A stretch of 64,000 nucleotides of DNA. It comes from Macrostomum lignano. Its lineage: Eukaryota. This document shows, in pieces, positions 21,501 through 47,680 of the stretch (position 1 is its first letter; each line of letters opens with the position of its first letter). Below the pieces are notes generated by a model. The model ran no database searches, had not been told where the DNA came from, and saw only the letters and a list, made by a program, of their open reading frames with translations. The stretch covers positions 1 to 64,000 of the forward strand of contig NIVC01003176.1 in NCBI GenBank assembly GCA_002269645.1, read 5' to 3'. A program made the position numbers and the translations under genes.

Positions 21501-22441
21501 AATCTGTATCGTAAAACTCTCTGTATGCCTACTACCAGTAGCTAATAAACGCCTTTTGATTGGTTCAAATTGCCACGAAACCGGCCCTCTAAAAGTAGCT
21601 TCTAGGAGTCTGATAAGAATTAGGAGTGACTCTGCTTAGGATTAGGAGTGACTCTCTGAGGATTAGGAGTGACTCTCTGGCGATTAGGAGTGACTCTACT
21701 GAGATTAGGAGTGACTTTGATGAGGATTAGGAGTGACTGTGATGAGGATTAGGAGTGAAGGAGTGACTGTGATGAGGATTAGGAGTGAAGGAGTGACTGT
21801 GATGAGGATTAGGAGTGAAGGAGTGACTGTGATGAGGATTGGGAGTGAAGGAGTGACTGTGATGAGGATTAGGAGTGACTGTGATGAGGATTAGGAGTGA
21901 AGGACTGACTGTGATGATGATTAGGAGTGACTGTGATGAGGATTAGGAGTGACTCTCTGAGGATTAGGAGTGACTCTCGGTTAAACCTGCCGCCTCCGCA
22001 GGCGTCTCCATGGACACGGACATCGACATGCTGGCCAGCATGACCGAAGATGAGCAAATCGCGATGGCGCTGCGCATGTCCCTCCAACCCGAGCTTGGTG
22101 CCGAGACCCCGGCGCCAACTGCCAGTGCCGCGGCCGCCGCTGCGGGCGGCGCCGGCACCGCTTCTGGTGCCGCTTCTGGCTCGTCTAGCGAAGGCCGCCT
22201 CGATCCGCCTAGCAAGAAAATCAAAGTCGACCCGTCCGAAGATCTCAAATCCGGCTCAGCAGCCGCCGATGACGACGAGGCCCTCGAGGACCCGGAATTC
22301 CTGGAAAGCGTGCTCCAAGGCCTGCCGGGCGTGGACCCGAAATCCGCCGAAGTTCAAGCCGCCCTGCGCAATAGGAAGCGCGACAAAGACGGCGGCAATG
22401 AGGGCGGCAGCGGCGGCGGCGGCGGCGGCGGAGCCGCTTGA
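18565..22441 (+). CDS. PSMD4: 26S proteasome ubiquitin receptor Rpn10/S5a; 5 exons, ~427 aa
   Basis: Exons 18565-18705, 18948-19166, 19968-20153, 21185-21482, 22002-22441. vWA domain start [46 protein letters not shown]1 [19 protein letters not shown]2 [16 protein letters not shown]-terminal [17 protein letters not shown]. Confidence 0.96.
19200..19932. repeat. 30-bp minisatellite in PSMD4 intron 2
   Basis: Unit GATAGTTATCCCAATTAGGGATATTTTATT with a near-palindromic core. Confidence 0.95.
20197..21170. repeat. 23-bp then 21-bp minisatellites in PSMD4 intron 3
   Basis: CTCCCATGAGAATCTCTCTCTCA to ~20790, then CTCTCACGAGAATCGCCCT(G/T)A to ~21170. Confidence 0.95.
21615..21980. repeat. 21-32-bp minisatellite in PSMD4 intron 4
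   Basis: GATTAGGAGTGACTGTGATGAG-type units. Confidence 0.92.
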
Positions 22442-23886
22442 TTCATTAATTTTGTTACCTGCTTTATTAATCCTTACCTATTACTGTCTGACTAAAAACT
22501 CGTTGGTTTGTTTTCGGGTCTTATTAATTAACTGCGCGCCTCTTTTGTTATTCTTAGGAGAAACTATTAAGATATGGTTACCTAGCAACGGGTGTGTTTA
22601 CCTTGGATACCGGCAGTTTTTCGGATTTTCCGTGTAGCTTAAATACTCTGCATAGCAACGGGTGTGTTTACCTTGGATACCGCTACCTATAGTGAACAGA
22701 AAATTGCTTCCTTATCTACAGCCCTACCATAACTACGCGACTTAAGTTGCCTTGGGTACCAACGACTCTTGTGTACTTTTATATTTTCAGCAAAGCTATG
22801 TACTATTAAATCAATTCAAAAGTTTGTCAATACTTGTACGATCTATTTGCAACCGTAGTAAAGCGAACACCACTATAATAAAAGTTTATATTTTCCTTTA
22901 TTCCGCTCCAATTCGGCTTGTCTAAACTACTTCAAGTAGGACTGCATGAATATGACTATTCAATTTGCTAATAAAGAATCAAATTGGCAATTGGCATTTT
23001 TTCTGCAAAAAAGCAAATAAAACTTAAAGTGCGTACTAATACGATCATTTAGCTTTGTCACCTCTTTTCCCCAAGTCTTTTAACTTCAGCAAAAAAGTTT
23101 AAATAATACTAAACAATGGGAATATCTGCCGTCTTGCGCTACATATTTTGTTGCTGCTAAAAGAAGACAAATTTTGCCTGGCCTGAAAGGCATCAATTGT
23201 TTGACTTTGTTTTCGTGTTTTCTTTAATAAAACTGACCTAACGAAACATGCCAAGTGGACTACTCGCGAAAACCAGATGAAGCCTTCATTTATTGAGGAT
23301 TCGTCCTTGAAATGCAGATCATTTGTAATCTTGATCGCATGCTGTAAAGTGTAAACCACATTGTTGTTCAGGCATCGCGCGTCCTTCGAGTCATAAAAAT
23401 ACAGTAAGATGGCTGCTGTATGCTGTCACGTTATTTTTTGTTTACTAAGCACAGTGGCCAGTGGGTAGCTTTGGTTTCAGAATTAGCACGGCCCAAGAGT
23501 CCAAATCCAGACCAGACAATGTGCCTTAGTCACCTGATGATGCTGGCAGCCTCAGGGCAGACCACAGATATTATAGTAATCTACAGACAGACAGACAGAC
23601 ATCAAGAGAGTTGAGTGAGAATTACAGTATGCAATGGAATTCTTCGCTTCTCTCGAAGAGTCGCAGTAAATACTGGTATAAAGCCTGTTTCTTTCATTGT
23701 CAGCACGCCTCAGACAGGATTCTGTGAGCGTCTTAAGGTCGTTATTTGACGGCGAATGTACATATGAAATGTACGCAACCCTAGAGAGGGAGAGAGAGTG
23801 GGGAGGGTGTTAAATTCTGGCACTCCAATTTAAAGACTTTCTAGTGGAAAATTCCACTCCAATAGAACCTTGTGTGTCCGTTTACT

Positions 23887-24055
23887 ATTGGCTACAATAA
23901 TCACTCAACCCCAAAGCGCCACCCTCCCCTATCCCCTACTAGCGAGACCCCCTCCAACCCCCCCCCCTCTATAAATTATCGGACGAAAGCGCAGTTGAGG
24001 CTTCGCCTGCCTTCTTTTTTGACACATTTTTAAATGGAGTCAATTCTGGGTAAGT
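23887..24055 (+). promoter_or_regulatory. Promoter and first leader exon of unknown-gene copy 1
   Basis: ATTGG (reverse CCAAT) at 23887, C-rich tract, TATAAAT at 23970, GCAGTT initiator-like site, donor G|GTAAGT at 24050. The same order is conserved in copies 2 and 3. Confidence 0.7.
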
Positions 24056-24469
24056 TTAACAATTTGGTTGTTATTGTTGCTTATCTGATGATATTCTTGT
24101 TTGTGCTGTTTTGGTAATCAGTGCAGTGGCTGTAAAATTACTAATTAGTGTAGATACCCTTAAGCGAGTGCTCAACATGTACTTTTAGATCTCTTAATAC
24201 TATTACTAGTTTACTAACTTTTAACTAGCGTTTTTCAATACGTTTCACGGCGTTATCAATAGGAATTCTACGAGTATAGAAAATTTGGAGCAATATGATG
24301 GCAATTTAGATAAGCAAGCTTGACCAACTTTAACTCTTGCTCTTACAAATTATATATATGTGCATGTATTTTCTGTATAGACTAAGCACTATAGGCCTTC
24401 TAAACACTGTCGGATCGGACACTTTCTGTAATTTTATCCGTTTTTGCAGCCATGTTGATTCGACTGGAA

Positions 24470-24770
24470 AATTTCCAGGAAATTGGCGTAGAAAATTTCC
24501 AGGAAATTGCGCATCTGAAATTTCCAGGAAATTGGCGTAGAAATTATTTTATGCTTTCGAAGAAAGTGCGCATCTGAAATTTCTTGGAAATTGGCGTAGA
24601 AATTATTTTATGCTTTCGAAGAAAGTGCGCATCTGAAATTTCCTGGAAATTGGCGTATAAATTATTTTATGCTTTCAAAGAGAGTGCGCATCTGAAATTT
24701 CTTGGAAATTGGCGTAGGAATTTTTAGGCTTTTGAAGAGAGTGCGCATCTGGAATTTCCTGGAAATTTTC
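24470..24770. repeat. ~59-bp tandem repeat in intron 1 of copy 1
   Basis: Unit GAAATTGGCGTAGAAATTATTTTATGCTTTCGAAGAAAGTGCGCATCTGAAATTTC(C/T)TG. Confidence 0.9.
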
Positions 24771-25437
24771 GAGAAAAAATGATAAGAAATGACTACAATG
24801 CACTATGCAAGGTTGCACTGGTAGAGATAGGTACCCTGTAGCAAAAAGACAGTTCGTGTACACTGCCCAGTTCCAGAATTGCAAACTTTCCCAGCCTTTG
24901 CGCACTCGTATTGGCCTACAAGGCAGCGATAGACAGTCAGACAATCTCACGCCCACCCTCTGCGACAGCGTCAAACTTGAAGGTTCTGTTCTCTGAAAAA
25001 TCATGTGATGCTTTGGTAGAACTTCATAGTCCTCGTTGTACAAACTTTCATATGCTATTATACTACTTAGTTGCCTCAGCAGTAGCGTATGTACATGTAT
25101 GCAGAAATACTTTCATAACAAGCTTGAAACAACTCAATCGTTCCAACCCCGCTCCTCTTCTCCTCCGTTGTCAGGGTAAACAACCTGAAATCCCAGAGGT
25201 GATCCTCGGCTGAGCAGGCCCGGCGGTGGCGGTGCCGGTAGTCGTGCTTTTTGTGCGGAGTCTGGCAAAAGAAAACAAACACAAAACTTCTCTACTTAAC
25301 TTCCTGATGTCAGTCGAAACACAGAATCACCACAACCTGCATCGTCGCTGCTGTTCAACATCGCCTCCGTCCGGCGCCCATCAGGATGGAGGAGCCGACG
25401 GTGATTTCGAATTGCGACTATCATTGGTCAGATTTGA

Positions 25438-26064
25438 ATGCCAGATAAGATCGTTGTAGCAATCAGCAACAGCTTTAGTTTTCTAATGGAACTGAGAAAC
25501 GCACGCAACGGCGGCGGCGTACCGGCCGCTGTGCAGCGTCGAAGTTACGAGAACAATATCACCTTCTTCCAGTTCATTCTCGATAGTCAAGAGGACGGTC
25601 GTCTGGTGCCAAAGCGGCAGCAGCAACAGCGGCACGTAACTGTTTGGCACGTGTGGCATGCAGACAGTGTCGTTGTCAAGGAACCGGAGTCGGAGACATC
25701 AGGCCGGAGTTACACCGTCCGTCTGCCGAGGAAGTCTCCAGATTCGATCGGGACTGAGGCAGTCATCGAGGATGTGTTCGGCATGGCTTTTAAGATCGAA
25801 AGCTCGACGGATTACCAGCAGTTTTTGAGCAGTTACCATCGGATTGAGTGCCAGGTGACTGGAGCATCGTCGGTTCCTATCGGAGGATCGCCAAGTATTT
25901 ATAAAACACTTGTTGAAGTTGGCGACGCCGCTTCAGACCAGCTGGACGCGGTGCGCATCCGGGAGGTGCTGAATGATGTACACCTGTTCCAGTCGGGGCA
26001 GGTGGACATTGCGAGCAACGCGACAGATGGAGTGCCGTCTTCTGCGCTGTTGATTGAGTACTGA
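25438..26064 (+). CDS. Unknown 208-aa protein, tandem copy 1
   Basis: Non-repetitive, GC-richer ORF, intact in three near-identical copies and downstream of a conserved promoter and spliced leader. I do not recognise the family. The true start is uncertain (see findings). Confidence 0.72.
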   Translation: MPDKIVVAISNSFSFLMELRNARNGGGVPAAVQRRSYENNITFFQFILDSQEDGRLVPKRQQQQRHVTVWHVWHADSVVVKEPESETSGRSYTVRLPRKSPDSIGTEAVIEDVFGMAFKIESSTDYQQFLSSYHRIECQVTGASSVPIGGSPSIYKTLVEVGDAASDQLDAVRIREVLNDVHLFQSGQVDIASNATDGVPSSALLIEY

Positions 26065-27049
26065 TTGAGTACTGATCATTGTGCATTGATGACGCGCGAA
26101 TTTGACTAAGTTTCACTGAGCATACTAAATAACTAAGTAGTACTTGTTCAACATTTCTGCTCAGTTGATCGGCACCGATGCAACACCCGCTTGGTCGCTG
26201 ACTAAATACAAGTTTTAGCAAACACCTTTAAAATCTGCTTCTTTGTGTTGCGTTTAATTTCCTTTTTCTGTATGCAATAATTGTATAAAAGTCGTAGTTG
26301 TTACTGTCTATGGATCAATAGTTCGTAAATCAAATTTGATTAAGTAGTTGAGAAACAATAATTGAGTGCTTGTACGTTGACCTGATCTGAATGTGAGAGA
26401 TCACAAATGGGATAGCAAATAAATCCTGGGCTCCAGAGCAGTTTGTTGGTAAACATGACCGTTTTGGCTTCCGACTAAGAGTCCGACTGAGGTCACATTG
26501 GTTTGCCCAACGCTCCCTCCGCCCGTCCCAGCAGAGAAGATCTCTAGTGGTATCGACCGAGAGGCCCGGCGGCCCGCGCATAGTGCCGGTTGTGTCATCG
26601 GTAGAGCCCACCTTGAGAATGGGGTCACAATTGAAGATCAATAACTACATTTTGGCGCATCATTTTATCTAGATAAATTGTACTTTACATGTATAGCGCT
26701 TGATTCTCAAATAGGAATGGTGCTTGCTTGTTTATCTAATCACTCTAGCCATAGGGTTATCGACTATACCTGTCACGCTAGTCTTTTGTCTGTAACTCTG
26801 TACACTCCTTGGTTATCTGATGCTGGCAGCGGCAGGGCAGACAGAAGACAATTAAGAGAATAGAGGCAGAATTACAATATGCAATGAAATTCTGCACTTC
26901 TCCCAAAGTCGACGTCGGTCAGCGGTCGGCTACTGACATTGGTCATACGTCCGCCGACGTCGAATTTCCGTACGGGTCTCAAGGTCGTTGTCATTGACGA
27001 CGAATATGCATAGATGTACCCACCCTAGGGAGAATGCAGTCCGTTTACT

Positions 27050-27215
27050 ATTGGCTACAGCTGCTGCGATAATCACTCAACCCCCGCCACCCTTCCCCAT
27101 TCGCATACTGCCCCCAACCCCTCCCCCTCTATAAATTATCGGACGGAGGCGCTGTTGAGGCTTCACCTGCCTTCTCTTTCGACACATTTTTAAATGGAGT
27201 CAATTCTGGGTAAGT
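27050..27215 (+). promoter_or_regulatory. Promoter and first leader exon of unknown-gene copy 2
   Basis: ATTGG 27050, TATAAAT 27130, donor at 27210; homologous to copy 1. Confidence 0.7.
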
Positions 27216-28931
27216 TAAACTTTAGTTGTAATTGTTGCTTATCTATAATAATATTTTATCTGGTTTTACAAATCAATGCGGTGGTTTGTACATGTACAAT
27301 TAGTATAACCCTTAAGCGAGTTGCTTCAAATGTACATGTACTATTCATAGTATTAATATAGTACTAGGCCATTTAAAACTATTAAATATACATCTATATA
27401 CTGAGCTAAGACGAGCGGATGAGACTACTACTGGTACAAATCTCAGTCTAATAGAGCTAAGTTTAAAGGCAATAAAGGCAATTTTAAGGGCAATTTAGAT
27501 AAATTATTTGATAAGCATGCAAGCTTGATAGACGTTTACTTTATTAATTTAGCTATAGATAGACTACGTACTAGCTTATAAGCACTGTCTGATCGGACTC
27601 CAGTGTGAGCTCTTCTATGCAAAAATAATGGAATGCACCCAATAAATATATGGAAACGTTCTGGCCACAAGTAGAAACTAACGTTCCGAATTTAAATCAG
27701 GCACTTAAAACTCGCTGGTTTTAACAGCATGGAGTTAATAATTTATTATTATGACAGCTTCTGAAACTTTGCAGAAATTATAAGGCACCTTTTAACTCAG
27801 TACTGTAAACGAAAACATGGAACTAAAACTCACCGTCTAGGTTGTTCCTTGTGAGCAATGCATTTATGTAAAACCAGGAACTGCACACCCAGTTCTAATA
27901 ATAGAACCGCCCCGCAAGACTGCGAATGCTGTTGGTCAAGAACTAGGTACTGTGGGAATAAAAAGCCGATCGATCATCGCATATTTTTGTAACAAGGTAG
28001 TACCCGAAATCTATTTTAAATGCAATCTAAAATCTATTCATTTCCTGAACTCATTTATTACTGGTAGTTACGAAACTACACTAATGGCCGCAGCGAAAAA
28101 AGATTTAATCGCCACCATTGTCAAGATGACGTCGGCTCTTGACAATAAAGAAAGTTCAGTTAAAGAACGCAAACTAAACGCATGAAAGGATGAGTTTCCA
28201 CTACTACCATTACCACTCGTAGCAGAAAGACAGCTCATTTACACAGCCTAGTTGCAGTTATAGTTACTAACTTTCTCATCCTTTTCGCACTCACATATTT
28301 GGCCTATTAGGGTGTTAACGATAAGGTATAGCGGTGGACAGTCGGTGTGTCAGACAATCCAACATTCACCCTCAGCGGCAGCAAAAAACTATAGGATTTA
28401 TTTTCTCTTCACATGAAAAATCATGTGATGCTTGGTGGAACTCCGTAGTTCTCGTTTTACAAACTTTCATACTCTGGTATGTTTGTACATGTATGCAGAA
28501 ATACTTTCATAACAAGCTTGAAACAACTCAATTCTTCTTCCCCCGCTCCTCTTCTCACCCGTTTCCAGGGTAAACAACCTGAAATCCCAGAGGTGATCCT
28601 CGGCTGAGCAGGCCCGGCGGTGGCGGTGCCGGTAATCGTGCTTTTTGTGCATAGTCTGGCAAAAGAAAACAAACAGAACTTTTTACTTAACTTCCTGATG
28701 TCAATCGAACCCAAACAACAACCAAAAACTTCTCTGTGCGGTAGTTGTGCTTCTATTATTACTTCGAACAAAGCAAACGAATTGTCTACTAAACTTCCTG
28801 ATGTCAGTCGAAACACAGAATCACCACAACCTGCATCGTCGCTGCTGTTCAACATCGCCTCCGTCCGGCGCCCATCAGGATGGAGGAGCCGACGGTGATT
28901 TCGAATAGCAACTATCATTGGTCAGATTTGA

Positions 28932-29558
28932 ATGCCAGATAAGATCGTTGTAGCAATCAGCAACAGCTTTAGTTTTCTAATGGAACTGAGAAACGCACGC
29001 AACGGCGGCGGCGTACCGGCCGCTGTGCAGCGTCGAAGTTACGAGAACAATGTCACCTGGTTCCAGTTCATTCTCGATAGTCAAGAGGACGGTCGTCTGG
29101 TGCCAAAGCGGCAGCAGCAACAGCGGCACGTAACTGTTTGGCACGTGTGGCATGCAGACAGTGTCGTTGTCAAGGAACCGGAGTCGGAGACATCAGGCCG
29201 GAGTTACACCGTCCGTCTGCCGAGGAAGTCTCCAGATTCGATCGGGACTGAGGCAGTCATCGAGGATGTGTTCGGCATGGCTTTTAAGATCGAAAGCTCG
29301 ACGGATTACCAGCAGTTTTTGAGCAGTTACCATCGGATTGAGTGCCAGGTGACTGGAGCATCGTCGGTTCCTATCGGAGGATCGCCAAGTATTTATAAAA
29401 CACTTGTTGAAGTTGGCGACGCCGCTTCAGACCAGCTGGACGCGGTGCGCATCCGGGAGGTGCTGAATGATGTACACCTGTTCCAGTCGGGGCAGGTGGA
29501 CATTGCGAACAACGCGACAGATGGAGTGCCGTCTTCTGCGCTGTTGATTGAGTACTGA
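28932..29558 (+). CDS. Unknown 208-aa protein, tandem copy 2
   Basis: 4 nt differences from copy 1 (I41V, F43W, and S->N near the C-terminus). Confidence 0.72.
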   Translation: MPDKIVVAISNSFSFLMELRNARNGGGVPAAVQRRSYENNVTWFQFILDSQEDGRLVPKRQQQQRHVTVWHVWHADSVVVKEPESETSGRSYTVRLPRKSPDSIGTEAVIEDVFGMAFKIESSTDYQQFLSSYHRIECQVTGASSVPIGGSPSIYKTLVEVGDAASDQLDAVRIREVLNDVHLFQSGQVDIANNATDGVPSSALLIEY

Positions 29559-29944
29559 TTGAGTACTGATCATTGTGCATTGATGACGCGCGAATTTGAC
29601 TAAGTTTCACTGAGCATACTAAATAACTAAGTAGTACTTGTTCAACATTTCTGCTCAGTTGATCGGCACCGGTGCAACACCCGCTTGGTCGCTGACTAAA
29701 TACAAGTTTTAGCAAACACCTTTAAAATCTGCTTCTTTGTGTTGCGTTTAATTTCCTTTTTCTGTATGCAATAGTTGTACAAATATTCGTAGTTGTTACT
29801 GTCAGTGGATCAATAGTAGTTAGTAGTAAGACGGATTTCTGAAAAAGTAAAAGTATTGAAAAACATTTATTCAGTGCTTGTACGTTGACCTACCCTAGCT
29901 GAATGTGACGTATTCACAAATGAAATGACGGATCTAGCAAATAA

Positions 29945-30914
29945 AATTCCGGGCAAGCGCCGAAAAATCAGAAAGCCGTGGATCACCAGAGGTCCTCGAT
30001 AGCTGCGACAGACGACGTGAGCTACGAAGCAAAAGACACGTGGGTCGCGGGAAAGAAAAGATGGACGAGTACAGAAAAAAGGAATTGCGAATACAATTCT
30101 GATAGCATGCAGCCAAATAAGAATGTGCAGAGGAACAATCAAGGCTGGTGGAAAGCAACTCTAAGAGGAACAACACGAGAGAAGCCTATATAATAATCAA
30201 GAAACTAACGTGATGGAAAGACACAAAAAACAAATGAATGTTGTAGAAGGTCGCGAAAGAGCACTACAGACCAAATTGCCAACTTGCTAGCGTGAAAAGG
30301 CTAGAAATCAACGGAAAATAATATCACAATTTGATTACTTCAAAAAGGCCTTTGACAGGGCGAAGCGCTTTGGCACACAATGAAAAAATACAACATCGAA
30401 GAAGACATCACGAGAGTAATTAAGCGACTGTATGAAGAAGCTAAGACTAAATTTATAGCAGGTGACCAGTACAGATACTGGTTTAGGGCAACGGTGAGAG
30501 TGAGACAAGAATTTATCCTATCAGCCACTCACAATTCAAACTTGTCCTGGAAAGGATAATTACAGAAACTATGGAGGAACTGAATGAGGTCGAAATCAGC
30601 TGCGGAGGCATGAAAATCAACAACTTAGAGTTTGCATGGACGACATCGATTTGATTGACAAGGTGAGGAAGAATTACAAGAATTGACAACGAAACTAGAC
30701 AGAACTAGAAGAAAGTTGGAATGCAAGTCAGCAAGGAAAATAGTAAGACAATGGTGTCAGGGAATGGGGGAGTCGGGCTAGGGATTGTGATTGATGGAGA
30801 AGAACTGAAATAGGTGAAGAAGCTTAAAATATCTGGGGGCAACCATCATGGAGAATGGGACCTCGGAGGAAGAGATCATATAGAATCCGCATTGGCGTCG
30901 CAGCCAGCTCAATG
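29945..30914 (+). mobile_element. Decayed RTE-clade LINE, 5' part
   Basis: Frameshifted KPWIT.EVLDSCDRRRELRSKR, AYIIIKKLT, D.FKKAFDR, KLVLERII, INNL.FA, KTMV, IRIGVAASSM. Confidence 0.85.
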
Positions 30915-32751
30915 ATAATGCGAGGACCACTAGAAGTTGCCGTTGTATCAACAACAGGTAGCGGAAGTCTCGACACTCTGCAATGGTGTCGCCGCTAGGG
31001 AGGATCAGAGCAGGGGCGTTCGCGATGCCGACGTGTAGGACCTCGGTTTTTGGCGTTAATTCTCAGACCAACTCGCTCGCCTTCTTGATAGAGACGGGAG
31101 AGGGTGCGCTAATTAAGCGGCTTCAGGGTCACGGCAGGAGAGGGCTTTGTTGTCTGCGAACCCGAGGGCAGCGATTGTGACACCCGGTGAAACGTCGGCT
31201 CCTGCGGCGTGCGACGACAAAACCGTTTTCTTTTCGAGCGAGCGGCGGGGTACGTAATCGAGCACAACGATGAAGATGAAATGGGCGAGGGTGTCTTCTT
31301 GCAGGACGCCAGAGCTGGTGGAGAAGTCATCTGTGCGATCCTGGCGGAGCTAGGTAAAAGCTTTGGTGTTACTATATAGGTAACGCGCAGAACTCCGGAA
31401 GCGGCCGCCAGAATAAATGGGACGACAGAGCGATCGATGGTGTCAAAGGTTTTGATGAAATCAACAAAGATAACGCTATCGTGATCGTGTGGCTTAGCCT
31501 GCATGTTTCGAGAATGTGCTGGGCGGTAGCAATTTGCGTTGGTTGACCGGCCCGGACGAAATCGGCGAGCAGAAGTGGGTCGATGACACGCACGAGCCGT
31601 TTTCTCAGAATCGAGTTGAGCAGTTTGGGAAGCGTGCACTCGAGCGCAATTCCTCTCTGGTTGTTCAGGTCGGTCGGGATGCCCTTCTTCGGGATTGATG
31701 CAATTTTTTATATCCGTCACGTCTCCGGGGCCAGGGTGGAATGGTTGCCTCCGATTTGCGAGTTGTTGCATGTAAGTAGAGCCGTGAAGATGCGTCAGTT
31801 CAGGCAGCTTGAGCACCCTGAGAAGGATGCAATCAAGGCCCGCAGCAGCATCGGGCTACATCATGTCAAGGGCGTAACGAATTTCACTCAGTGATGGGTT
31901 CAACATCGAAGTCGCTCTCTTTTGCCGGGTTGAGGCCCGGGATAGGGAGGAGGATCTGAGTCGCAGGTGACGGTGCGTTAAAGACACGGCTGTAGTGTTC
32001 CACCAGCTTTTGCTTCCTGTCCTCGATCGACTCAGCCCCGACAGCTGATTGTCCTTCCTTCCTGTCAAGTTGTTGATGGCCCGCCAGGCAGCTCTGGCAA
32101 CGCAAATTCTCTTCTTCTCCACGAACTTCTTCGATGAAGAGACCTCGCACCGGTAAACGGCTTCCTCAAATGTTATTGCAAACTGCCAACTTTCTTCGGC
32201 ATGAGAGGACGCGTGACGCGCCTTGATTGGCTGCTCTGCCCTCGTTCTCACATCACACATCAACAAGGTGCGCAAGGTCGTCAACATTCGACCAGCTTGC
32301 ACCCCCTCTGATCACAGTCTGCTTGCTTGCGAAGTGAAACTGCAATGGCTCATATTCAAGACTCTATTCCCTCTCCAAGCCAACCTTCGCAACCCTGACA
32401 CGAAAACCAAGTTCGTCAGGCGTATCTTCGAATCTGACAGAAATCCAGCGGTTTCCGCCAAATCCTTCGCCCCAGCTGTTAAAACTGCTGCTCCTCTAAA
32501 ACCTCTCATCTTCCCAAAGCGGTCTGTGACGCCGACCCACACATCGACAAGGCCAGGCGAGCGTTCAAAGCGTCATCGCTAAATGGGATCCCAACAGTGA
32601 AGCTCCCGCTCGTGCAAGGGAAGATCTCCAGAAAACCTATGCTCAACACACCAAGATGCATGTGGAAGAAGCCGTCAAGGAGATCAGCTCTGCGACTGAG
32701 GCGTCGCAACACAGAGCTGCCTGGCGCACCATCAACAAGTTCAGGAGGTAT
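30915..32751 (-). mobile_element. Second decayed LINE (RTE-like) inserted in the first, with an inverted 5' segment
   Basis: Minus strand 32222->30930: AAWRAINNLTGRK, IFVDFIKTFDTIDR, GVLQEDTLAHF, ALGFADN. Plus strand 32223-32750: endonuclease end PSDHSLL and linker EEAVKEI..AAWRTINKF. Confidence 0.82.
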
Positions 32752-33037
32752 TGGGAAAGGAACCAGCATATGTAGAGGAGATCATCAAGCGGAGAAAGCT
32801 TAAATATTACGGACATCAGACGCGGAATTAGAGAGCTTGGCAAATGTCTGTGTTCAAGGAGCAATGGAAAATAAAAGAAGAGGAACCCACCGAAAAGCCA
32901 ATGGGAAGATGACCTGAAGGAATGGACCGGATGGACAATGGAGAGGTTAAGAAGAGCAGCGAAGGACAGGCAGTGGTAGCGGAAGCTGCTGCATGAATGG
33001 ATGCCCCCACGGCCATGACTGCTACGTCGGTAAAAAG
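32752..33037 (+). mobile_element. Decayed RTE-clade LINE, 3' end (continuation of 29945-30914)
   Basis: IIKRRKLKYYGH, QGAMENKRRG, WEDDLKEWTG, AKDRQW. Confidence 0.85.
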
Positions 33038-33244
33038 ACGTTGATCTTAAATGTCTAGTGCGAGCGTACGCACTACGATGGTCAATCAGTACAAAAAAGG
33101 TAGCTTCCAATCTTGATTACATTGCATATACGCGTCACTGTGACTCGAAAGTTGACAACATGGTTTTCAGATAAACTGACCCCCTCGGTCTCAAAGTGCA
33201 CCTTAACTTGGTCTTAAGTGGAATCTACCTCGGTCTCAAAGTGG

Positions 33245-33537
33245 CCTCTTCCTCGGTCACAAATTGAACTCTTCCTCGGTCACAAATTGAACTCTTCCTC
33301 GGTCACAAATTGAACTCTTCCTCGGTCACAAATTGAACTCTTCCTCGGTCACAAATTGAACTCTTCCTCGGTCACAAATTGAACTCTTCCTCGGTCACAA
33401 ATCGAACTCTTCCTCGGTCACAAATTGAGCTCTTCCTCGGTCACAAATTGAACTCTTCCTCGGTCACAAATTGAACTCTTCCTCGGTCACAAATCGAACT
33501 CTTCCTCGGTCACAAATTGAACTCTTCCTCGGTCTCA
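33245..33537. repeat. 23-bp minisatellite
   Basis: Unit AACTCTTCCTCGGTCACAAATTG; related to the array at 37680-38270. Confidence 0.95.
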
Positions 33538-33611
33538 CAGGTTTTTCCCCATGTTTTCCAAATTTTCAGCACATTTTTATACATAACTAATAAATTTATT
33601 ACAATAAATTC

Positions 33612-33706
33612 TGTTCTTGGGTGGCACTTTGAGCAATTGTATACGTGATCAAACAAATTTAACCAATCACACTGCGAACGCGGGCAATCCTGGTGCGGGA
33701 TATTCC
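33612..33706 (-). pseudogene. Duplicated, degraded fragment of the ROPN1L last codons and 3' UTR
   Basis: GGGTGGCACTTTGAGCAATTGTATAC...GCGGGCAATCCTGGTGC matches ~38479-38570. Confidence 0.8.
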
Positions 33707-33729
33707 GGAATTATCTATAGAGAAGGGGC

Positions 33730-33960
33730 TCCGAGGAAGGCATATTCATGCTTTCAAAGGCTGTAGAGGGCCATGTTGGGCGCCCATAGTAGTTATGCGG
33801 CAGGTTCTGCCCTGGATTCTGTAGGGAGCGTCGAGGTTACCCTTGACGCTAAGGCCGATAGCCCACACGAGGCTGGCGAAACTGATGGAGGGGCGGATAA
33901 TGGCAGTGTAAATTCACCGCAGCTTCTTGGGAATGAGCCCCAAAGGTGGTGCTCACGGAG
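33730..33960 (-). mobile_element. Short LINE fragment (RT C-terminal region, R1/LOA/I-group-like)
   Basis: Minus frame GLIPKKLR*IYTAIIRPSISFASLVW...RIQGRTCRITTMGA resembles the WGL.P..L.WIY.A+IRP.+.Y...VW..LQR.AC..ITGA region. Confidence 0.7.
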
Positions 33961-34295
33961 CACCTAGTCTAGTTAAATACATTTTGCACATGTTATTCTG
34001 GTTTAACTTTTCAGCTACATGTGTAAGCAAGTAGCTCATGTGTAAATACCAGCAATTTCGGCCGATTACTCGTATATTTAATGAATTAGATTAGGGTTCG
34101 TTTCGTGCTAATATACGAGCTACTTGTGGTGACCGGCCTGAGTATTCGTTCCGATCGTTGGATCGTTTCAATGAAATTGATTTTTAGGTTTCAGAAATTG
34201 AGGTTGGCTGTACAACTACTATAAGTAGTTATGCAAAACTAGCAACTAAAGATTACAATTTTATGTATGAAGTGCTATGTACATATTCTCGTATA

Positions 34296-34578
<283 letters not shown>

Positions 34579-35094
34579 ATGTTTTTGGACTGTGTGGTTC
34601 AAGCATCGCGAGCCCTAAGAGTCATAAAAATACATGTAGTAAATATAGTAAGATGGCTATAGCTGCTGTTATACTGTATATTGTCCCTTTCATTTTTTTG
34701 TTTGCTGAGCACAGTGGGCCGCTTCAGTCTCAGAAGTATCAAGGCCCAAGAGTCCAAGATCCACATCAGACAAGTGCCCGTGTACACTCCTTTGTTATCT
34801 GATGCTGGCAGCGGCAGGGGCAAGACAGACAGACAATTAAGACAATACATGTAGAGGCAGAATTACAATGGAATGCAATGGAATTTTCCACACTTCCCCC
34901 AGAGTCGCAGTAAATCCAGTGTTCCGTGCGTGAGCCTCTCAAGGTTGTTGTCATTGATGGCGAATGTGCATAGCCGTGACCAACCTTAATGAGAGGGGAT
35001 TGGGGAGGGTGTTGAATTCTGGCACTACATCTAAAAAACTCTCTTGTGGAAAATTCCTCTCCAATACTCGTAAAACCTCGTGTGTCCGTTTACT

Positions 35095-35266
35095 ATTGGC
35101 TACAGAGACAGCTGCTGCGATAATCGCTCAACCCCACCGCCACCCCCTCCGCGGGAGCCCCCAACCCCTCCCTGCCCCCTCTATAATTATCGGACGAAGG
35201 CGCAGTTGAGGCTTCGCCTGCCTTCTTTTTTGACACATTTTTAAATGGAGTCAATTCTGGGTAAGT
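35095..35266 (+). promoter_or_regulatory. Promoter and first leader exon of unknown-gene copy 3
   Basis: ATTGG 35095, TATAATT 35182, donor at 35261. Confidence 0.7.
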
Positions 35267-36596
35267 TGGGTTGTAATTGTTGATTGTCTAATGTCTAATA
35301 TTATTTTGTGCTGTTTAGTTAGCTGTTTTGGTAATCAATTCAGTGGCTGTATAATTACTATAATTACTAGTCTTTATCTGCTCGTCTTAGCTTGGTATAA
35401 AGATGTTAGAGTAAAAGTCGGCCATGCTTGTTTGTCTAAATTGCTATCATATATACTTATTGCTCCAATTGTAAATAAACTTCCTATAGTATAGTATAAA
35501 ACCGTGAAAACTTGAAATACATGAAAATGCAATGCCATAATTATAATAATAAATAACTAGCCTTATTCATTCAGCTCAATCGCTGCAAGTCAGCTATAGT
35601 CTATATAAGATAGCATAGGCCTTCTAAGCACAGGCGAAACGGACTGAGCAAAAAATCCTTGAAAAGTTGTCCAACTACTACCTGTATAAACTAAAATGTA
35701 AGTGTGCTGCATTCTAATAAAATTTAATTCTAAAAGACGGTGAAGTGTGAATGTTATTTAAGTCAACTGTTCGTAATTTTTTGCGTTTATTTTGCAAAAT
35801 TGCACGCACAATAATATAAAAGTAATAATAATATTTTGCAGCCGTGTGGATTCCAAAGGAAAATTTCCTGCAAATTCCTGTAGAAATTGTTTTGGCCTTT
35901 CGGAAAAAGTACGCCTCTAAAATTTCCGGGAAACTGTTGAGAAAATGACTACAATGCACTATGCAAGGTTTCCCTGTAGAGGTATAGGTACCCTGTATAG
36001 CAAGACAACTCATGTACACTGCTGATCTGCAGTTAGTTACTTAACTTTCTCACTCTCTCTGCGAACTCGTATCGGCCTATAGGGTAGCGATGGCCATGCA
36101 GTCAGTCAGTGTAGGTCAGGGAGTCCCGCATCCACCCTAAGTGACAACGAAAAACTGTATGAGTTCTTTTTTCTTCTCATAAAAAACTCATGTGATGCTT
36201 GGAAGAACTGTGTTGTCCGTTTATACAAACCTTCATATGCTATACTACTTATTGTTGTCTCAGCAGTATATCATGTACATTATGCATAAAAACTTTTCTA
36301 ACAAGCATTAAACAACTCAATCTTTCTTCCGCCACTCCTTAACCGTTGTCAGGGTAAACAACCTGAAATCCCAGAGGTGATCCTCGGCTGAGCAGGCCCG
36401 GCGGTGGCGGTGCCGGTAGTCGTGCTTTTTGTGCGGAGTCTGGCTAAAAACTTCTCTACTTCTTTATGTCAGTCGAAACACAGAATCACCACAACCTGCA
36501 TCGTCGCTGCTGTTCAACATCGCCTCCGTCCGGCGCCCATCAGGATGGAGGAGCCGACGGTGATTTCGAATTGCGACTATCATTGGTCAGATTTGA

Positions 36597-37223
36597 ATGC
36601 CAGATAAGATCGTTGTAGCAATCAGCAACAGCTTTAGTTTTCTAATGGAACTGAAAAAGGAACGCAACGGCGGCGGCGTACCGGCCGCTGTGCAGCGTCG
36701 AAGTTACGAGAACAATGTCACCTGGTTCCAGTTCATTCTCGATAGTCAAGAGAACGGTCGTCTGGTGCCAAAGCGGCAGCAGCAACAGCGGCACGTGACT
36801 GTTTGGCACGTGTGGCATGCAGACAGTGTCGTTGTCAAGGAACCGGAGTCGGAGACATCAGGCCGGAGTTACACCGTCCGTCTGCCGAGGAAGTCTCCAG
36901 ATTCGATCGGGACTGAGGCAGTCATCGAAGATGTGTTCGGCATGGCTTTTAAGATCGAAAGCTCGACGGATTACCAGCAGTTTTTGAGCAGTTACCATCG
37001 GATTGAGTGCCAGGTGACTGGAGCATCGTCGGTTCCTATCGGAGGATCGCCAAGTATTTATAAAACACTTGTTGAAGTTGGCGACGCCGTTTCAGACCAG
37101 CTGGACGCGGTGCGCATCCGGGAGGTGCTGAATGATGTACACCTGTTCCAGTCGGGGCAGGTGGACATTGCGAACAACGCGACAGATGGAGTGCCGTCTT
37201 CTGCGCTGTTGATTGAGTACTGA
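36597..37223 (+). CDS. Unknown 208-aa protein, tandem copy 3
   Basis: 7 nt differences from copy 2 (R20K, N21K, A22E, D53N, one A->V, 2 synonymous). Confidence 0.72.
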   Translation: MPDKIVVAISNSFSFLMELKKERNGGGVPAAVQRRSYENNVTWFQFILDSQENGRLVPKRQQQQRHVTVWHVWHADSVVVKEPESETSGRSYTVRLPRKSPDSIGTEAVIEDVFGMAFKIESSTDYQQFLSSYHRIECQVTGASSVPIGGSPSIYKTLVEVGDAVSDQLDAVRIREVLNDVHLFQSGQVDIANNATDGVPSSALLIEY

Positions 37224-37679
37224 TTGAGTACTGATCATTGTGCATTGATGACGCGCGAATTTGACTAAGTTTCACTGAGCATACTAAATAGCTAAGTAGT
37301 ACTTGTTCAACATTTCTGCTCAGTTGATCGGCACCGGTGCAACACCCGCTTGGTCGCTGACTAAATACAAGTTATAACAAACATCTTTAGAACCTAGCTG
37401 CTTGTTTGTATTGCGTTTAATTTCCTTTTTCTGTATGCAATAGTTGTACAAATATTCGTAGTTGTTACTGTCTATGGATCGCTACATGTAGTTAGTAAAT
37501 CAGATTTGATTAAGTGTGGGAGCAAAAGTTTGAGCGCTTTGTACTCGTACGTTGACCTTAAATGTCTATGAGCGTCCTTATAGTACCCAAGCCTGGAAAG
37601 CAACACAGCACGGAATTCGGATCGCAAGGAACACAGAGGTGAAGCAACGGCCTCCACAAACTTCAATCCGGAGGCTCCG

Positions 37680-38270
37680 GAAGTGGACTTTTCCTCGGTC
37701 TCAAATTGGACTCTTCCTCAGTCTCACAGTGGACTCTTCCTCAGTCTCACAGTGGACTCTTCCTCAGTCTCACAGTGGACTCTTCCTCAGTCTCACAGTG
37801 GACTCTTCCTCAGTCTCACAGTGGACTCTTCCTCAGTCTCACAGTGGACTCTTCCTCAGTCTCACAGTGGACTCTTCCTCAGTCTCACAGTGGACTCTTC
37901 CTCAGTCTCACAGTGGACTCTTCCTCGGTCTCACAGTGGACTCTTCCTCAGTCTCACAGTGGACTCTTCCTCGGTCTCACAATGGACTCTTCCTCAGTCT
38001 CACAGTGGACTCTTTCTCAGTCTCAAATTGGACTTTTCCTCGGTCTCACAGTGGACTCTTCCTCAGTCTCACAGTGGACTCTTCCTCGGTCTCACAATGG
38101 ACTCTTCCTCAGTCTCACAGTGGACTCTTTCTCAGTCTCAAATTGGACTTTTCCTCGGTCTCACAGTGGACTCTTTCTCAGTCTCAAATTGGACTCTTCC
38201 TCGGTCTCACAATGGACTCTTCCTCGGTCTCACAGTGGACTCTTCCTCAGTCTCGCACACTGGACTCTTT
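37680..38270. repeat. 23-bp minisatellite between copy 3 and ROPN1L
   Basis: Unit GACTCTTCCTCAGTCTCACAGTG; explains three overlapping periodic ORFs. Confidence 0.96.
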
Positions 38271-38534
38271 AAGTGTACACCTTTAGCCGTCTTTAAGCAG
38301 ACAGACAGATGAAGCAGTCCTCAAGCGAATTAATTAACCACTCAGAAGCTCAAAATGAAATAAGAACTCAGTTTCTTCTGCCTATGCAGAAGCTTGCATA
38401 TACGAGCGTGTATATTTGCAACTTGAATTTCTGCTTTTGTTATACCGGCTTACAAAATTTAATCATTAGAATCAAGTTTGTTTTGGGGTGGCACTTTGAG
38501 CAATTGTATACTTAATCAAATAAAATTTGCCCAA

Positions 38535-39909
38535 TCACTGCAAAGGCGGGCAGTCCTGGTGCAGGAAATTCCTCGGCTGGATGACACCCTTCTGTCGTTC
38601 CACGTCGCTAGCCAGGTGAGTGAGGGCTGCCTCAGCCACCTCGGGATCGGCCTCCTGGTTGAGGCTGTACAGGTACAGGTACAGCCGTTTCCAGGTGTCG
38701 AAATTCATTCGAGCCGGGCCGCCCTCCGGATCGGCTGTGAGCTGCTCGCAGATCAGCTTCATCGTGTCTGTCAGGTCGCCGCAGAGCGAGGAGCAAGCAA
38801 CAGAGAAGAACTTCAGCCATTCCACTTTGCCTGTGAAGTCGCCAACCTTTGTGTTGGGAAACGGATAGAGTGCATTTCATAGTTGGGCGCGGATCGGGAA
38901 GTAGCATTGTTGGATCTAGATATAATTATAATTGCGCCTGATTATCTAATTTGAATTGCGTCTGATTATCTAATTGGAATTTCGCCTGATTATCTAATTG
39001 AAATTGCGCCTGATTATCTAATTGGAATTGCGCCTGATTATCTAATTGGAATTGCGCCTGATTCTTTAATTAGCTCGTATATAATTGGCTTGATCAACTA
39101 CATGCAATTGGAATTGCGCCTGATTATCTAATTGGAATTGCGCCTGATTATCTAATTTGAATTGCGCTTGATTATCTAATTGGAATTGCGCCTGATTATT
39201 TAATTTGAATTTCGCCTGATTATCTAATTGAAATTGCGCCTGATTATCTAATTGGAATTGCGCTTTGGTATCGAATTGGAATTGCGCTTCGGTATCTAAT
39301 TATAATTGGCTTGATTAACTACACGTAGTTGGGATTGCGCTTTATTATCAAATTTTAATTGCACTTGGTAATTTAGTTGGACTTACGAATTTAATTGTGT
39401 AACATTAGTATTAGAGAAATGTGTCACCATCAATCAGGAATGTGCTTTTGTCTAGCAGGAAGGCTCAGTGTGAAAGAACTTAATTAATAATCTAAAAAGA
39501 ATGTATGGTGCATGGCTGAACTATCTAATCTAACAGAACCAACCTGCAGCAGCTCCTGAAGCCGCTCTGACGGCAGATTGATTGCCCGCCATTTTTCGGC
39601 AATTTCGTCCACCTCGACCTGCTTCTTCGGGCCCAGCTGTTTATTCAATACTCGCAACAGACCAGGCGTCAGTCCCGAGTCAGTCTTTTGGGTCGCCACC
39701 GCCATCTCAAGTCGCTCCTTCACTGGCGGCGTCTCGGCGTTGGCCATCGCTCGAAAATAGGCGGCAGACCACTGAAGCACATCCTGCGGCTGCGTGCGAA
39801 TGGCCGATTTGGTGTACTGCTTTAGCACGTCGGGTAGGCTGGGGGGAATCTGGATCTGCTCAGAGCAGTAGTACGGATCCTCTGGGTCTTCCTTTTTGTC
39901 GCGGGTCAT
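38535..39909 (-). CDS. ROPN1L: Ropporin-1-like (RIIa-domain, axonemal radial-spoke/AKAP-binding protein); 2 exons, ~225 aa
   Basis: Exons 39909-39544 and 38846-38535. YCSEQIQIPPSLPDVLKQYTKSAIRTQPQDVLQWSAAYF, ATQKTDSGLT.GLL, ICEQLTADPEGGPARM. Confidence 0.93.
38930..39360. repeat. 24-bp minisatellite in the ROPN1L intron
   Basis: Unit ATTGCGCCTGATTATCTAATTGGA. Confidence 0.93.
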
Positions 39910-47220: not shown

Positions 47221-47409
47221 GACAGACGCATAAAAGTACACTTTATGTACTTTTTACTGAATGAAAAAACATTGTTTCCCATAATCTTCAACGGAATTTT
47301 TACAATTATCCTCATATAACGTCATGGAATTATTTTTCATGATGTTTGCTTCACTTCACGTGACTTGGCCAGCAATAGATTCCCTTCTGTGATTGCAACT
47401 CGGTCTATG

Positions 47410-47680
47410 TAGGTCACGTGACTTTACTAATGCACAGTAGGTACCAACTGCGGCTGCAACTCTGGGTCACGTGACTTTACTAATGCACAGTAGGCACCCA
47501 CTGCGGCTGCAACTCTGGGTCACGTGACTTTACTATTGCACAGTAGGCACCAACTGCGGCTGCAACTCTGGGTCACGTGACTTTACTATTGCACAGTAGC
47601 CACGCACTGCAGCTGCAACTCTGGGTCACGTGACTGCTAATGCACAGTAAAGGGCACTCTGGGTCACGTGACTTTGCAAC
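47410..47680. repeat. 53-bp tandem repeat carrying six GTCACGTGAC palindromes
   Basis: Palindromes start at 47413, 47466, 47519, 47572, 47625 and 47663. Confidence 0.93.

Follow-up and report, generated by a model that had tools for sequence, protein, structure and literature searches.

A tandem orphan gene family in Macrostomum lignano with a conserved structured mRNA leader and a possible shunt-type layout

Introduction

Several leader architectures let ribosomes deal with upstream open reading frames (uORFs). In ATF4 and GCN4, a short permissive 5' uORF is followed by a uORF that overlaps the main start out of frame. In the "zipper" model of Cat-1 (SLC7A1), translation of a 48-codon uORF remodels the leader into an active IRES. 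In the leaders of CaMV, RTBV, RTSV and foamy viruses, a short uORF is translated, the structure behind it is bypassed and the main start is used (PMC5902531, PMC3291615). The short uORFs of RTBV and RTSV have 7 and 6 codons and end 7 and 8 nt before the closing helix (PMC5902531, PMC3291615).

Here we describe a gene array in a 64,000-nt stretch of M. lignano DNA (contig NIVC01003176.1, positions 1 to 64,000; hereafter the window). As in CaMV, RTBV, RTSV and prototype foamy virus, its leader has a 5'-proximal short uORF, of 6 codons, ending 7 nt before a closing helix, then a large AUG-rich structure, an AUG-free, moderately A/U-rich stretch and the main start. Unlike the viral pregenomic RNAs, it belongs to a cellular, intron-containing animal gene known from sequence alone, and an 8-bp helix closes a near-invariant four-way junction where the viruses have a stable elongated hairpin. 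The leader shares with ATF4 and GCN4 a short 5' uORF and a conserved out-of-frame overlapping uORF, but here a very stable conserved structure separates and surrounds the uORFs, the stop-to-helix spacing is fixed, and one family member tolerates many extra AUGs. As in Cat-1, the uORF overlaps a strand of one hairpin (H1), whose formation competes with that of helix P1, such that translation could switch the fold; yet there is no sequence or structure similarity to Cat-1, the uORF has 6 codons against 48, and the switch is predicted thermodynamically only. The best explanation overall is a tandem orphan gene with a shunt-type leader, a reading we place just short of probable.

Results and discussion

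The window contains three intact 208-aa ORFs in direct tandem repeat with 97.6–98.6% protein identity, confirming the tandem copies of the initial annotation. Its promoter, donor and long-intron assignments also stand. A TATA box and a CCAAT box, the latter inverted (ATTGG), precede all three copies at about the same spacing, and in copy 1 the first AUG lies 64 nt downstream of the TATA box. Exon 1 ends identically in each copy (ATGGAGTCAATTCTGG, then GTAAGT; donors at 24050, 27210 and 35261), and the 64-kb window contains this motif exactly three times, where zero occurrences would be expected. An intron of the anticipated ~1.1–1.4 kb follows, and directly 3' of each acceptor (25175, 28569, 36353) lies an identical block. 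Together these features define a two-exon, TATA-driven, protein-coding gene in three tandem copies:

23887..23976 (+): copy 1 core promoter; inverted CCAAT (ATTGG, 23887-23891), TATA box TATAAAT 23970-23976
27050..27136 (+): copy 2 promoter; ATTGG at 27050, TATAAAT 27130-27136
35095..35188 (+): copy 3 promoter; ATTGG at 35095, TATAATT 35182-35188
24000..24049 (+): copy 1 exon 1; 5' end inferred ~30 nt past TATA, uORF1 AUG 24034, donor G/GTAAGT at 24050
27160..27209 (+): copy 2 exon 1; 5' end inferred, uORF1 AUG 27194
35212..35260 (+): copy 3 exon 1; 5' end inferred, uORF1 AUG 35245
24050..25174 (+): copy 1 intron, 1125 nt, GT...AG borders
27210..28568 (+): copy 2 intron, 1359 nt
35261..36352 (+): copy 3 intron, 1092 nt
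25175..26290 (+): copy 1 exon 2 (leader, CDS, 3' UTR); 3' end uncertain; colinear with related transcripts
25438..26064 (+): copy 1 CDS, 208 aa
28932..29558 (+): copy 2 CDS, 208 aa
36597..37223 (+): copy 3 CDS, 208 aa

The copy 1 intron, ~75% identical to those of the other copies, also holds a tandem repeat (59 nt, 4–5 units) at 24496-24784.

The copies are 95–97% identical over leader, CDS and ~350 nt of 3' flank, and ~75–80% identical in promoter and intron. Because exon 2 is so much more alike than its surroundings, and its few differences are mostly non-synonymous, the sequences point to probable homogenisation of exon 2 by gene conversion or unequal crossing-over, and not to protein-level selection alone. 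A homologous M. lignano scaffold (L002) carries two copies at 94–96% identity, so that copy number differs between assemblies (3 vs 2). In narrow lineage, variable copy number and exon homogenisation, the array resembles other tandem orphan families under concerted evolution.

The best protein match is an M. lignano protein (BOX15_Mlig025766g2, 95% identical), and in that species the gene is annotated as a hypothetical protein only. Searches of 1.8–5.8 billion proteins returned ~10 related protein clusters. Family proteins have ~190–220 aa, and the relatives lie nearly all on RNA-seq contigs of ~1–1.4 kb, several of which carry Illumina adapter or poly(A); the small, apparently flatworm-restricted family is known from M. 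lignano and RNA-seq contigs alone. Between members, dN/dS is 0.16–0.5, with dS from 0.63 to saturation. Two contigs (L004, L006) contain the spliced exon 1/exon 2 junction, ...AATTCTGG joined to GGTAAAC/GGTAGAAC..., and the spliceosomal intron position is conserved between relatives. A search for an M. lignano transcript of the gene found none, and the M. lignano protein cluster has one, genome-derived, member; expression and splicing in M. lignano itself we infer from the relatives' transcripts. The undescribed family suggested at first reading is thus transcribed, spliced, protein-coding and without recognisable relatives, and is almost certainly a real expressed coding gene family.

The gene encodes a soluble, acidic protein of ~200 aa, which the initial annotation had likewise failed to recognise. 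The family matches nothing in Pfam, PDB sequences or Rfam, and Foldseek returned no significant structural match. A usable AlphaFold model (pLDDT 69.9, pTM 0.71), in which a beta-alpha-beta(n) arrangement is seen twice, indicates with moderate confidence an alpha+beta fold that resembles nothing solved. The model does not sustain the earlier comparison with PH-superfold domains: the strand and helix concerned (residues 114–142) lie mid-model with three more strands after them, and its Foldseek matches include no PH-like structure.

One part of the initial gene model fell. It had placed a 63-nt exon 2 before a short intron of 57, 76 or 176 nt, which in copy 1 corresponds to:

25238..25313 (+): supposed short intron, copy 1; distal 5' arm and variable apical loop of hairpin H3, retained in transcripts

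In M. lignano this stretch does open with GT and close with a pyrimidine tract and AG, and the evidence from the species itself is genomic only, retention being observed in relatives' transcripts. Still, the stretch is present in all seven related transcript sequences, and in L006 and L007 both GT and AG are absent, so that the gene comprises two exons, with the indel-rich stretch in its 5' UTR. The supposed donor sits within a fully conserved 15-bp helix, splicing would destroy H3, and indels of this kind are to be expected in a terminal loop. Copy 2 does have the described duplicated segment with CAAT for CAGT; the three-exon model that it was taken to support does not hold, as the stretch is retained in all the related transcripts. 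That M. lignano nonetheless splices it as a true intron is improbable.

The region folds instead into a structured domain, recovered in all copies by a covariance model:

25187..25408 (+): copy 1 leader domain; P1 = GAAATCCC (25187-25194) with GGTGATTTC (25400-25408); holds H2, H2b, long hairpin H3 and H4; RNAalifold consensus; covariance model 266 bits
28581..28902 (+): copy 2 leader domain; P1 28581-28588 with 28894-28902; covariance model 245 bits; H3 apical loop enlarged by a ~100-nt insertion including a partial duplication
36365..36567 (+): copy 3 leader domain; P1 36365-36372 with 36559-36567; covariance model 258 bits

The domain, ~220 nt with four helices here, spans ~200–650 nt across leaders. 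Its core is 76–96% identical to M. lignano even where synonymous sites are saturated, compared with 34–73% in the apical loop and 21–80% in the landing region. On these comparisons the mRNA 5' leader is conserved far better than the protein; this is the most unusual feature of the gene, and one that the initial annotation had missed. Orphan genes normally have no non-coding leader far more conserved than their protein, whereas this one does.

The same fold is predicted for each leader singly and as an RNAalifold consensus. Across its 57 consensus pairs, 97.7% of cells are paired, against 35–52% when partners are slid. Nine pairs show compensatory changes (0/500 shuffles reach the observed values), in a set of eight sequences where most pairs never vary. 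The basal 15 bp of H3 include five invariant G.U pairs and the covariance model scores the antisense strand far below the sense strand, both of which argue for function as sense-strand RNA. We consider it very probable that the leader is a functional structured RNA. The near-invariant sequence further implies a putative conserved binding partner.

Could the domain serve small RNAs or a mobile element instead? H3, with a conserved ~30-bp stem, two nearly invariant arms and a variable loop, could be read as a pri-miRNA-like precursor or dsRNA substrate within the 5' UTR, its arms conserved as mature small RNAs. Its apical region of 60–450 nt, however, far exceeds animal pre-miRNA loops; H2, H2b, H4 and P1 are equally conserved; and Rfam yielded no miRNA match, making this reading very unlikely. 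Less credible still is an accessory gene of a transposon or endogenous virus, with a leader that serves as a signal for packaging or replication. Pararetroviruses and foamy viruses do typically have structured leaders of the shunt type, and the window has a possible RT-like ORF (no Pfam match) and a weak integrase-core fragment. Yet transposon hallmarks were sought at the units and none found: neither terminal inverted repeats nor long terminal repeats flank them. The window has just three occurrences of the leader and exon-1 motifs, each with the gene; two assemblies show the locus in synteny with the PNKP gene; the spliceosomal intron keeps its position between relatives; and neither a viral nor a Pfam family matches the protein. 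The transposon-accessory or known-family match that the initial annotation had named as a possible refutation did not appear.

The AUGs around the domain suggest how it may act:

25177..25179 (+): uORF1 stop codon TAA, copy 1; 7 nt upstream of closing helix P1
25386..25388 (+): conserved upstream AUG, copy 1; strong context CAGGAUGG, inside H4; present in 8/8 leader types

uORF1 (MESILG*, 6 codons), fully visible in M. lignano, L004 and L006, the other contigs being 5'-truncated, begins at the first AUG in strong context (AAAAUGG) and spans the exon junction. Within the domain lie 2–12 AUGs, depending on the leader, and the uORF from the H4 AUG overlaps the main AUG out of frame. The main AUG, in weak context, follows 26–36 AUG-free nt downstream of P1. 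The 705-nt leader of L009 has eight AUG-started uORFs and 12 AUG triplets inside the domain, so many that linear scanning could hardly traverse it. The 3' half of uORF1 is predicted to pair with the 5' strand of P1 as hairpin H1, whose predicted energy is close to that of P1 (within ~6 kcal/mol in six leaders).

We propose that the 5' leader controls expression of the gene at translation, which is probable. Ribosomes would translate uORF1, stop 7 nt before P1, shunt over the P1-closed domain with H2, H2b, H3 and H4, and start at the main AUG. Since H1 and P1 share the 5' strand of P1 and differ little in predicted energy, uORF1 translation could also flip the leader from H1 into the P1-closed form. 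uORF-dependent shunting specifically is a more tentative proposal, offered as possible. P1, a bulged helix of just 8 bp, is much weaker than the GC-rich stems at the base of the CaMV and RTBV structures; A+U makes up no more than 50–66% of the landing region; and shunting needs only a stable stem, which leaves the near-invariant helix sequences unexplained.

The same uORF layout also fits ATF4/GCN4-type delayed reinitiation, in which the short uORF1 permits reinitiation, the H4 AUG opens an inhibitory uORF, and ribosomes scan linearly and, under stress, when ternary complex is scarce, skip the H4 AUG and use the main AUG. The out-of-frame overlapping uORF in 8/8 leader types, the short 5'-proximal uORF1 and the weak main-AUG context all agree with this. 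We nevertheless judge it unlikely: just ~50 nt separate the inhibitory AUG from the main AUG, scanning must melt structure of a predicted -90 to -200 kcal/mol, the extra AUGs of L009 would trap scanning ribosomes, and neither the fixed 7-nt spacing from uORF1 stop to P1 nor the compensatory changes are explained.

Equally doubtful is an IRES or a factor- or ligand-sensing switch, a P1-closed four-way junction with H1 as its alternative, that recruits or blocks ribosomes independently of uORF1. The multi-helix junction with its near-invariant sequence, invariant G.U pairs and variable-length peripheral arm suits such an element, as do the mutual exclusion of near-isoenergetic H1 and P1 and the ~450-nt insertion that L009 tolerates in its H3 tip. 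But the leader matches no IRES or riboswitch in Rfam, and this reading gives no reason for the conserved uORF1 or its spacing. No eukaryotic riboswitch is known other than the TPP class, found in plants, fungi and algae.

Conserved motifs also occur in the 3' UTR:

26114..26175 (+): copy 1 conserved 3'-UTR motifs; CACTGAGC (26114-26121), GCTCAGTTGATCGGCAC (26159-26175)
29608..29669 (+): copy 2 conserved 3'-UTR motifs
37273..37334 (+): copy 3 conserved 3'-UTR motifs

Candidate 3'-end signals of copy 1 are TATAAA at 26284 and AATAAA at 26418. In L004, the 3'-UTR motifs carry matching changes, CCGAGC with GCTCGG.

A tandem array of two-exon genes

The window, eukaryotic DNA rich in tandem repeats, carries three copies of one gene, each with an intact ORF.

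Open reading frames of the array
25438-26064, + strand, copy 1, 208 aa, intact
28932-29558, + strand, copy 2, 208 aa, intact
36597-37223, + strand, copy 3, 208 aa, intact

The three proteins are 97.6–98.6% identical to one another, and no further copy of the ORF occurs elsewhere in the 64 kb. Self-comparison of the window revealed that the entire unit is repeated, not the ORF alone: between copies, promoter/exon 1 and intron are ~75–80% identical, and the stretch that starts ~160 nt before the ATG and runs ~350 nt beyond the stop is 95–97% identical. Every copy has an inverted CCAAT and a TATA box; 64 nt downstream of the latter comes ATGGAGTCAATTCTGG, the same in all three, followed by the donor GTAAGT. 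Introns measure 1125, 1359 and 1092 nt (copies 1, 2 and 3), and the acceptor of each precedes an identical block beginning GGTAAACAACCTG. ORF search, self-comparison and motif positions thus all match the array, promoter and splice-site coordinates of the initial annotation.

Protein-coding differences within the array are few and mostly non-synonymous (3:0, 8:2, 5:2). Because high identity also extends over the UTRs, homogenisation by gene conversion appears to be the best reading of these sequences. L002, an M. lignano scaffold, represents the same locus at 94–96% nucleotide identity and continues into the same PNKP gene, but has only two gene copies versus three in the window, so copy number varies between assemblies; the junction pattern fits unequal crossing-over within the highly similar exon-2 block. 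The units are bounded neither by terminal inverted repeats nor by LTRs. In the window, the leader and exon-1 motifs number three each, all accompanying the gene, and L002 likewise has them only with the gene. Lacking both bounding repeats and dispersed motif copies in the window or L002, the gene is unlikely to belong to a transposable element or endogenous virus.

Transcripts of related genes, found mostly on RNA-seq contigs, bear on the exon structure. The spliced junction in L004 joins AATGGAGTCAATTCTGG to GGTAAAC, and L006 shows the same junction with GGTAGAAC, exactly the exon 1–exon 2 splice first proposed. An additional 63-nt exon and short intron upstream of the ORF had been proposed as well, but L001, L003/L004, L005, L006, L007, L009 and L015 all continue across the supposed donor and acceptor, and its GT and AG are missing in L006 and L007. 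Because the relatives' transcripts are unspliced here, the gene has two exons, judged by the splicing of its relatives. The earlier observation was largely right, with an exon model wrong in this one place. Searches gave no transcripts of the window species, exact-sequence look-ups of two window proteins gave no contigs, and the M. lignano protein cluster has one member, from genome annotation.

An uncharacterised, lineage-restricted protein family

The top protein match is an M. lignano hypothetical protein, BOX15_Mlig025766g2 (95% identity). Only ~10 clusters of relatives, 188–222 aa long, emerged when 1.84 billion representative proteins were searched exhaustively by profile and 5.8 billion in two indexed searches. 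Nearly all lie on contigs of 1.0–1.5 kb that were assembled from a JGI sample or from RNA-seq runs; Illumina adapter opens several of these, and one has a poly(A) end. Two very long prokaryotic proteins with weak profile scores (P0006, which carries Ig-like repeats, and P0007) dropped out once the family profile was broadened, and are spurious. Scanning metagenomes for peptide or leader DNA patterns gave unrelated bacterial matches only, and the literature held nothing on the locus tag, peptide or nucleotide motifs of the gene. Between family members, dN/dS is 0.16–0.5 (dS 0.63 to saturated), which marks the ORF as genuine, fairly fast-evolving coding sequence.

None of nine members matched Pfam at E <= 10, save for two unrelated single-member matches, and none had a PDB sequence match. 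The undescribed family suggested by the initial annotation holds up as an uncharacterised, lineage-restricted one. An AlphaFold2 model from a nine-sequence alignment reached moderate confidence (pLDDT 69.9, pTM 0.71); a five-sequence alignment gave an unusable model (pLDDT 29). The predicted fold is alpha+beta, roughly beta-alpha-beta(n) twice, in the order E4-10, H13-22, five strands, E114-120, H123-142 and three further strands. Foldseek returned nothing significant (best E 0.06 in PDB and 0.016 in BFVD, TM <= 0.3). The PH superfold is a seven-stranded antiparallel beta-sandwich closed by a C-terminal alpha-helix. An earlier guess of a PH/EVH1/RanBD-like domain finds no counterpart here: the helix is internal in this moderate-confidence model, and neither Foldseek chains nor profile matches were PH-like. 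The proteins are acidic (pI ~5–6, one 7.8), share no conserved cysteine pattern, and by eye have no signal peptide.

A conserved, structured 5' leader

Between the window copies and L001, the protein is only ~55–60% identical (0.60 over aligned codons); two leader blocks match at almost every base, with an indel-rich stretch between them. Compared with M. lignano, the eight leader types are 76–96% identical in the leader core, 34–73% in the intervening apical loop and 21–80% in the final ~30 nt before the ATG, and synonymous sites are saturated in most comparisons. Folded independently, the sequences adopt one common architecture, with which the RNAalifold consensus agrees.

Predicted helices of the leader domain
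P1, closing helix: GAAAUCCC with GG(N)GAUUUC
H2: GAGG/CCUC
H2b: GGCU/GGCC
H3, long hairpin with a 15-bp base: CGGCGGUGGCGGUGC/GCAUCGUCGCUGCUG, five invariant G.U pairs
H4: CGCCUCCGUCC/GGAUGGAGG

Pair counts on a MAFFT alignment support this architecture: 97.7% of pairs are standard versus 35–52% when partners are slid by 1–3 columns, nine pairs show compensatory changes, and 0 of 500 shuffles attain the observed values. The predicted P1 helix is 100% paired, with one compensatory and three one-sided changes. The domain spans 203–648 nt with predicted energies of -80 to -199 kcal/mol, and the folding energy of copy 1 has z = -3.0 against shuffles. In this model the supposed short intron is the distal 5' arm and apical loop of H3, which would explain why indels are confined to it; this tip stretch measures 57–176 nt in the window copies, and in L009 it is longer by ~450 nt. 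Judging by its G.U-rich predicted helices, the leader is a sense-strand RNA feature. A conserved leader peptide was rejected, since the frames and peptides of its upstream ORFs (uORFs) vary, including by a 1-nt indel in L001, which excludes coding constraint.

A covariance model derived from the alignment recovers the three window copies (245–266 bits) and both L002 copies, and matches nothing else on the same strand. It misses L009 and L010 (SRR30276804/12), the most divergent family member with a 705-nt leader, because of a ~450-nt insertion at the H3 tip that bears most of the uORFs. Only motif search and inspection by eye found H1 (an alternative hairpin), H2, P1 and H4-like elements there: L009/L010 retain the stop of uORF1, the 5'-proximal uORF, along with H1, H2, the P1 strands and a 30-nt AUG-free landing stretch.

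Such a structure could act as an IRES or RNA switch, or its long hairpin H3 could be a small-RNA precursor. Against these rivals, Rfam 15 gave no relevant match, whether IRES, riboswitch, miRNA, snRNA or other, in the genomic region (E <= 1) or in six spliced transcripts (E <= 5). Three short resemblances were also dropped. GGCGGTGGCGGTGCCGGTAGTC, considered for likeness to a tRNA primer-binding site and to 7SL/Alu, has no T-arm complement by eye and no SRP match in Rfam; UGAUCCU of the H2 loop complements the 18S 3' end over 7 nt only and is absent in L009.

A proposed ribosome-shunt configuration

The first AUG past the TATA box (AAAAUGG) opens uORF1, a 6-codon uORF (MESILG, then stop) that crosses the exon junction. 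M. lignano, L004 and L006 share its exact sequence, AUGGAGUCAAUUCUGGGGUAA/UAG, and L007 and L009 have its 3' part including the stop. Between this stop and P1 lie 7 nt in eight leaders, against 8 nt in L009. The P1-closed domain contains 2–12 AUGs, and the 26–36 nt from P1 to the main AUG are AUG-free and 50–66% A+U, with small local hairpins predicted in some members.

In plant pararetroviruses, RTSV and foamy virus, the shunt configuration consists of a short uORF near the 5' end that stops just ahead of a basal helix; this helix closes a large structure with many AUGs, beyond which lies an unstructured landing site. The RTBV uORF has 7 codons and stops 7 nt before the helix, that of RTSV 6 codons and 8 nt (PMC5902531, PMC3291615). 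Like CaMV/RTBV-type leaders, this gene's 5'-proximal AUG opens a few-codon uORF, which ends 7–8 nt before predicted P1 (a few nt, ~6–8, in that type) and precedes a large, stable predicted structure holding further AUGs. On the strength of this layout, we tentatively propose uORF-dependent ribosome shunting, possibly coupled to a switch from H1 to P1, and consider it a plausible candidate that falls short of probable. H1 would form from the 3' half of uORF1, UUCUGGGGU, pairable with AUCCCAGAG; it is predicted to be mutually exclusive with P1, and H1-forced and P1-forced predicted energies lie within ~6 kcal/mol in six leaders. Translation of uORF1 could thereby drive the switch to P1, and ribosomes would then shunt past the closed domain. 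Counting against shunting are the shortness of P1, a landing region of only moderate A/U content, and the near-invariant helix sequences, which shunting leaves unexplained and which imply an additional conserved partner.

ATF4-like delayed reinitiation is a rival. As in ATF4/GCN4, a short and presumably permissive uORF is followed by a second, opened by the H4 AUG CAGGAUGG, which in 8/8 leader types runs over the main AUG in another frame. The main AUG itself has U at -3 and usually C at +4, and an in-frame UGA or UAG immediately precedes it in most members. Far less likely than shunting alone, to our minds a long shot, is that the leader of this animal cellular mRNA is a sequence-specific RNA switch, a four-way-junction domain toggling between H1 and P1, whose near-invariant core is read by a ligand or factor and gates virus-style shunting onto a lineage-specific protein of new fold. 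If true, Metazoa would thereby gain their first described riboswitch-like sensor.

The shunt-like structured leader is the feature most deserving follow-up. Very few cellular mRNAs are known to conserve the viral arrangement of a short uORF in front of a closed structure, and evidence for such shunting comes mostly from viral RNAs. The family comparison amounts to a natural mutagenesis series: the 7-nt spacing stays fixed, pairs change in a compensatory way, and the loop accepts 60–450 nt. The mechanism is also directly testable, because Macrostomum lignano is a transgenic-capable model. That a non-coding leader evolves far more slowly than the protein it is proposed to control implies a conserved partner, and an orphan protein family of no known fold is likely under tight expression control.

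Motifs shared with the 3' UTR

The 3' UTR carries CACUGAGC and, ~40–75 nt further downstream, GCUCAGUUGAUCGGCAC. In L004, the 5' leader and the 3' UTR each have CCGAGC in place of CUGAGC, and the 3' UTR also has GCUCGG instead of GCUCAG.

Window equivalents of the hexamers changed in L004
25208-25213
26116-26121
26159-26164

These joint changes, in a single lineage, may stem from 5'–3' or intra-3'-UTR pairing. Cyclisation by pairing of leader CUGAGC/GGUGCCG with 3'-UTR GCUCAG/CGGCACC was rejected: the order is not colinear for a duplex, and the matching change occurs in L004 only.

Neighbouring genes and repeats

Other ORFs and genes in the window
5522-6217, + strand, protein-kinase exon
18544-22441, + strand, upstream neighbour with a weak sub-threshold VWA match and ubiquitin-interaction motifs
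30175-31666 and 31109-32311, - strand, ORFs between copies 2 and 3 with a FVDFIKTFDTIDRSV-like motif
39487-39942, - strand, ORF with a weak RIIa (PKA regulatory-subunit dimerisation/docking) match
42889-48248, + strand, downstream neighbour, polynucleotide kinase 3'-phosphatase (PNKP) gene with PNK3P and AAA_33 domains
56717-57496, + strand, weak sub-threshold integrase-core (rve) match, suggesting a retroelement fragment

The domain matches of the upstream neighbour suggest a proteasome Rpn10/PSMD4-like gene; its introns are packed with 21–30-nt tandem repeats (20078-21165, 21606-21982). Long tandem repeats also interrupt the PNKP gene (43560-45135), which is syntenic with M. lignano scaffold NIVC01000732.1. 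The stretch between copies 2 and 3 is missing from L002; its ORFs, without a Pfam match at E <= 0.01, are a possible reverse-transcriptase (LINE) fragment inserted into the array. RIIa domains occur in sperm flagellar proteins.

Repeats also accompany the array itself. A 23-nt satellite flanks copy 3 in two blocks ~80% identical to each other (33079-33700, 37590-38310), and a perfect 8-nt microsatellite of ~45 units (34232-34620) lies directly upstream of its promoter. Intron 1 of copy 1 holds 4–5 tandem 59-nt units (24496-24784), with one diverged copy at 35839-35950. Each unit contains a TTCC(A/T)GGAA-type palindrome, such as TTTCCAGGAAAT, resembling a STAT/GAS-type site, and the repeat could be an intronic regulatory element or a mere minisatellite.
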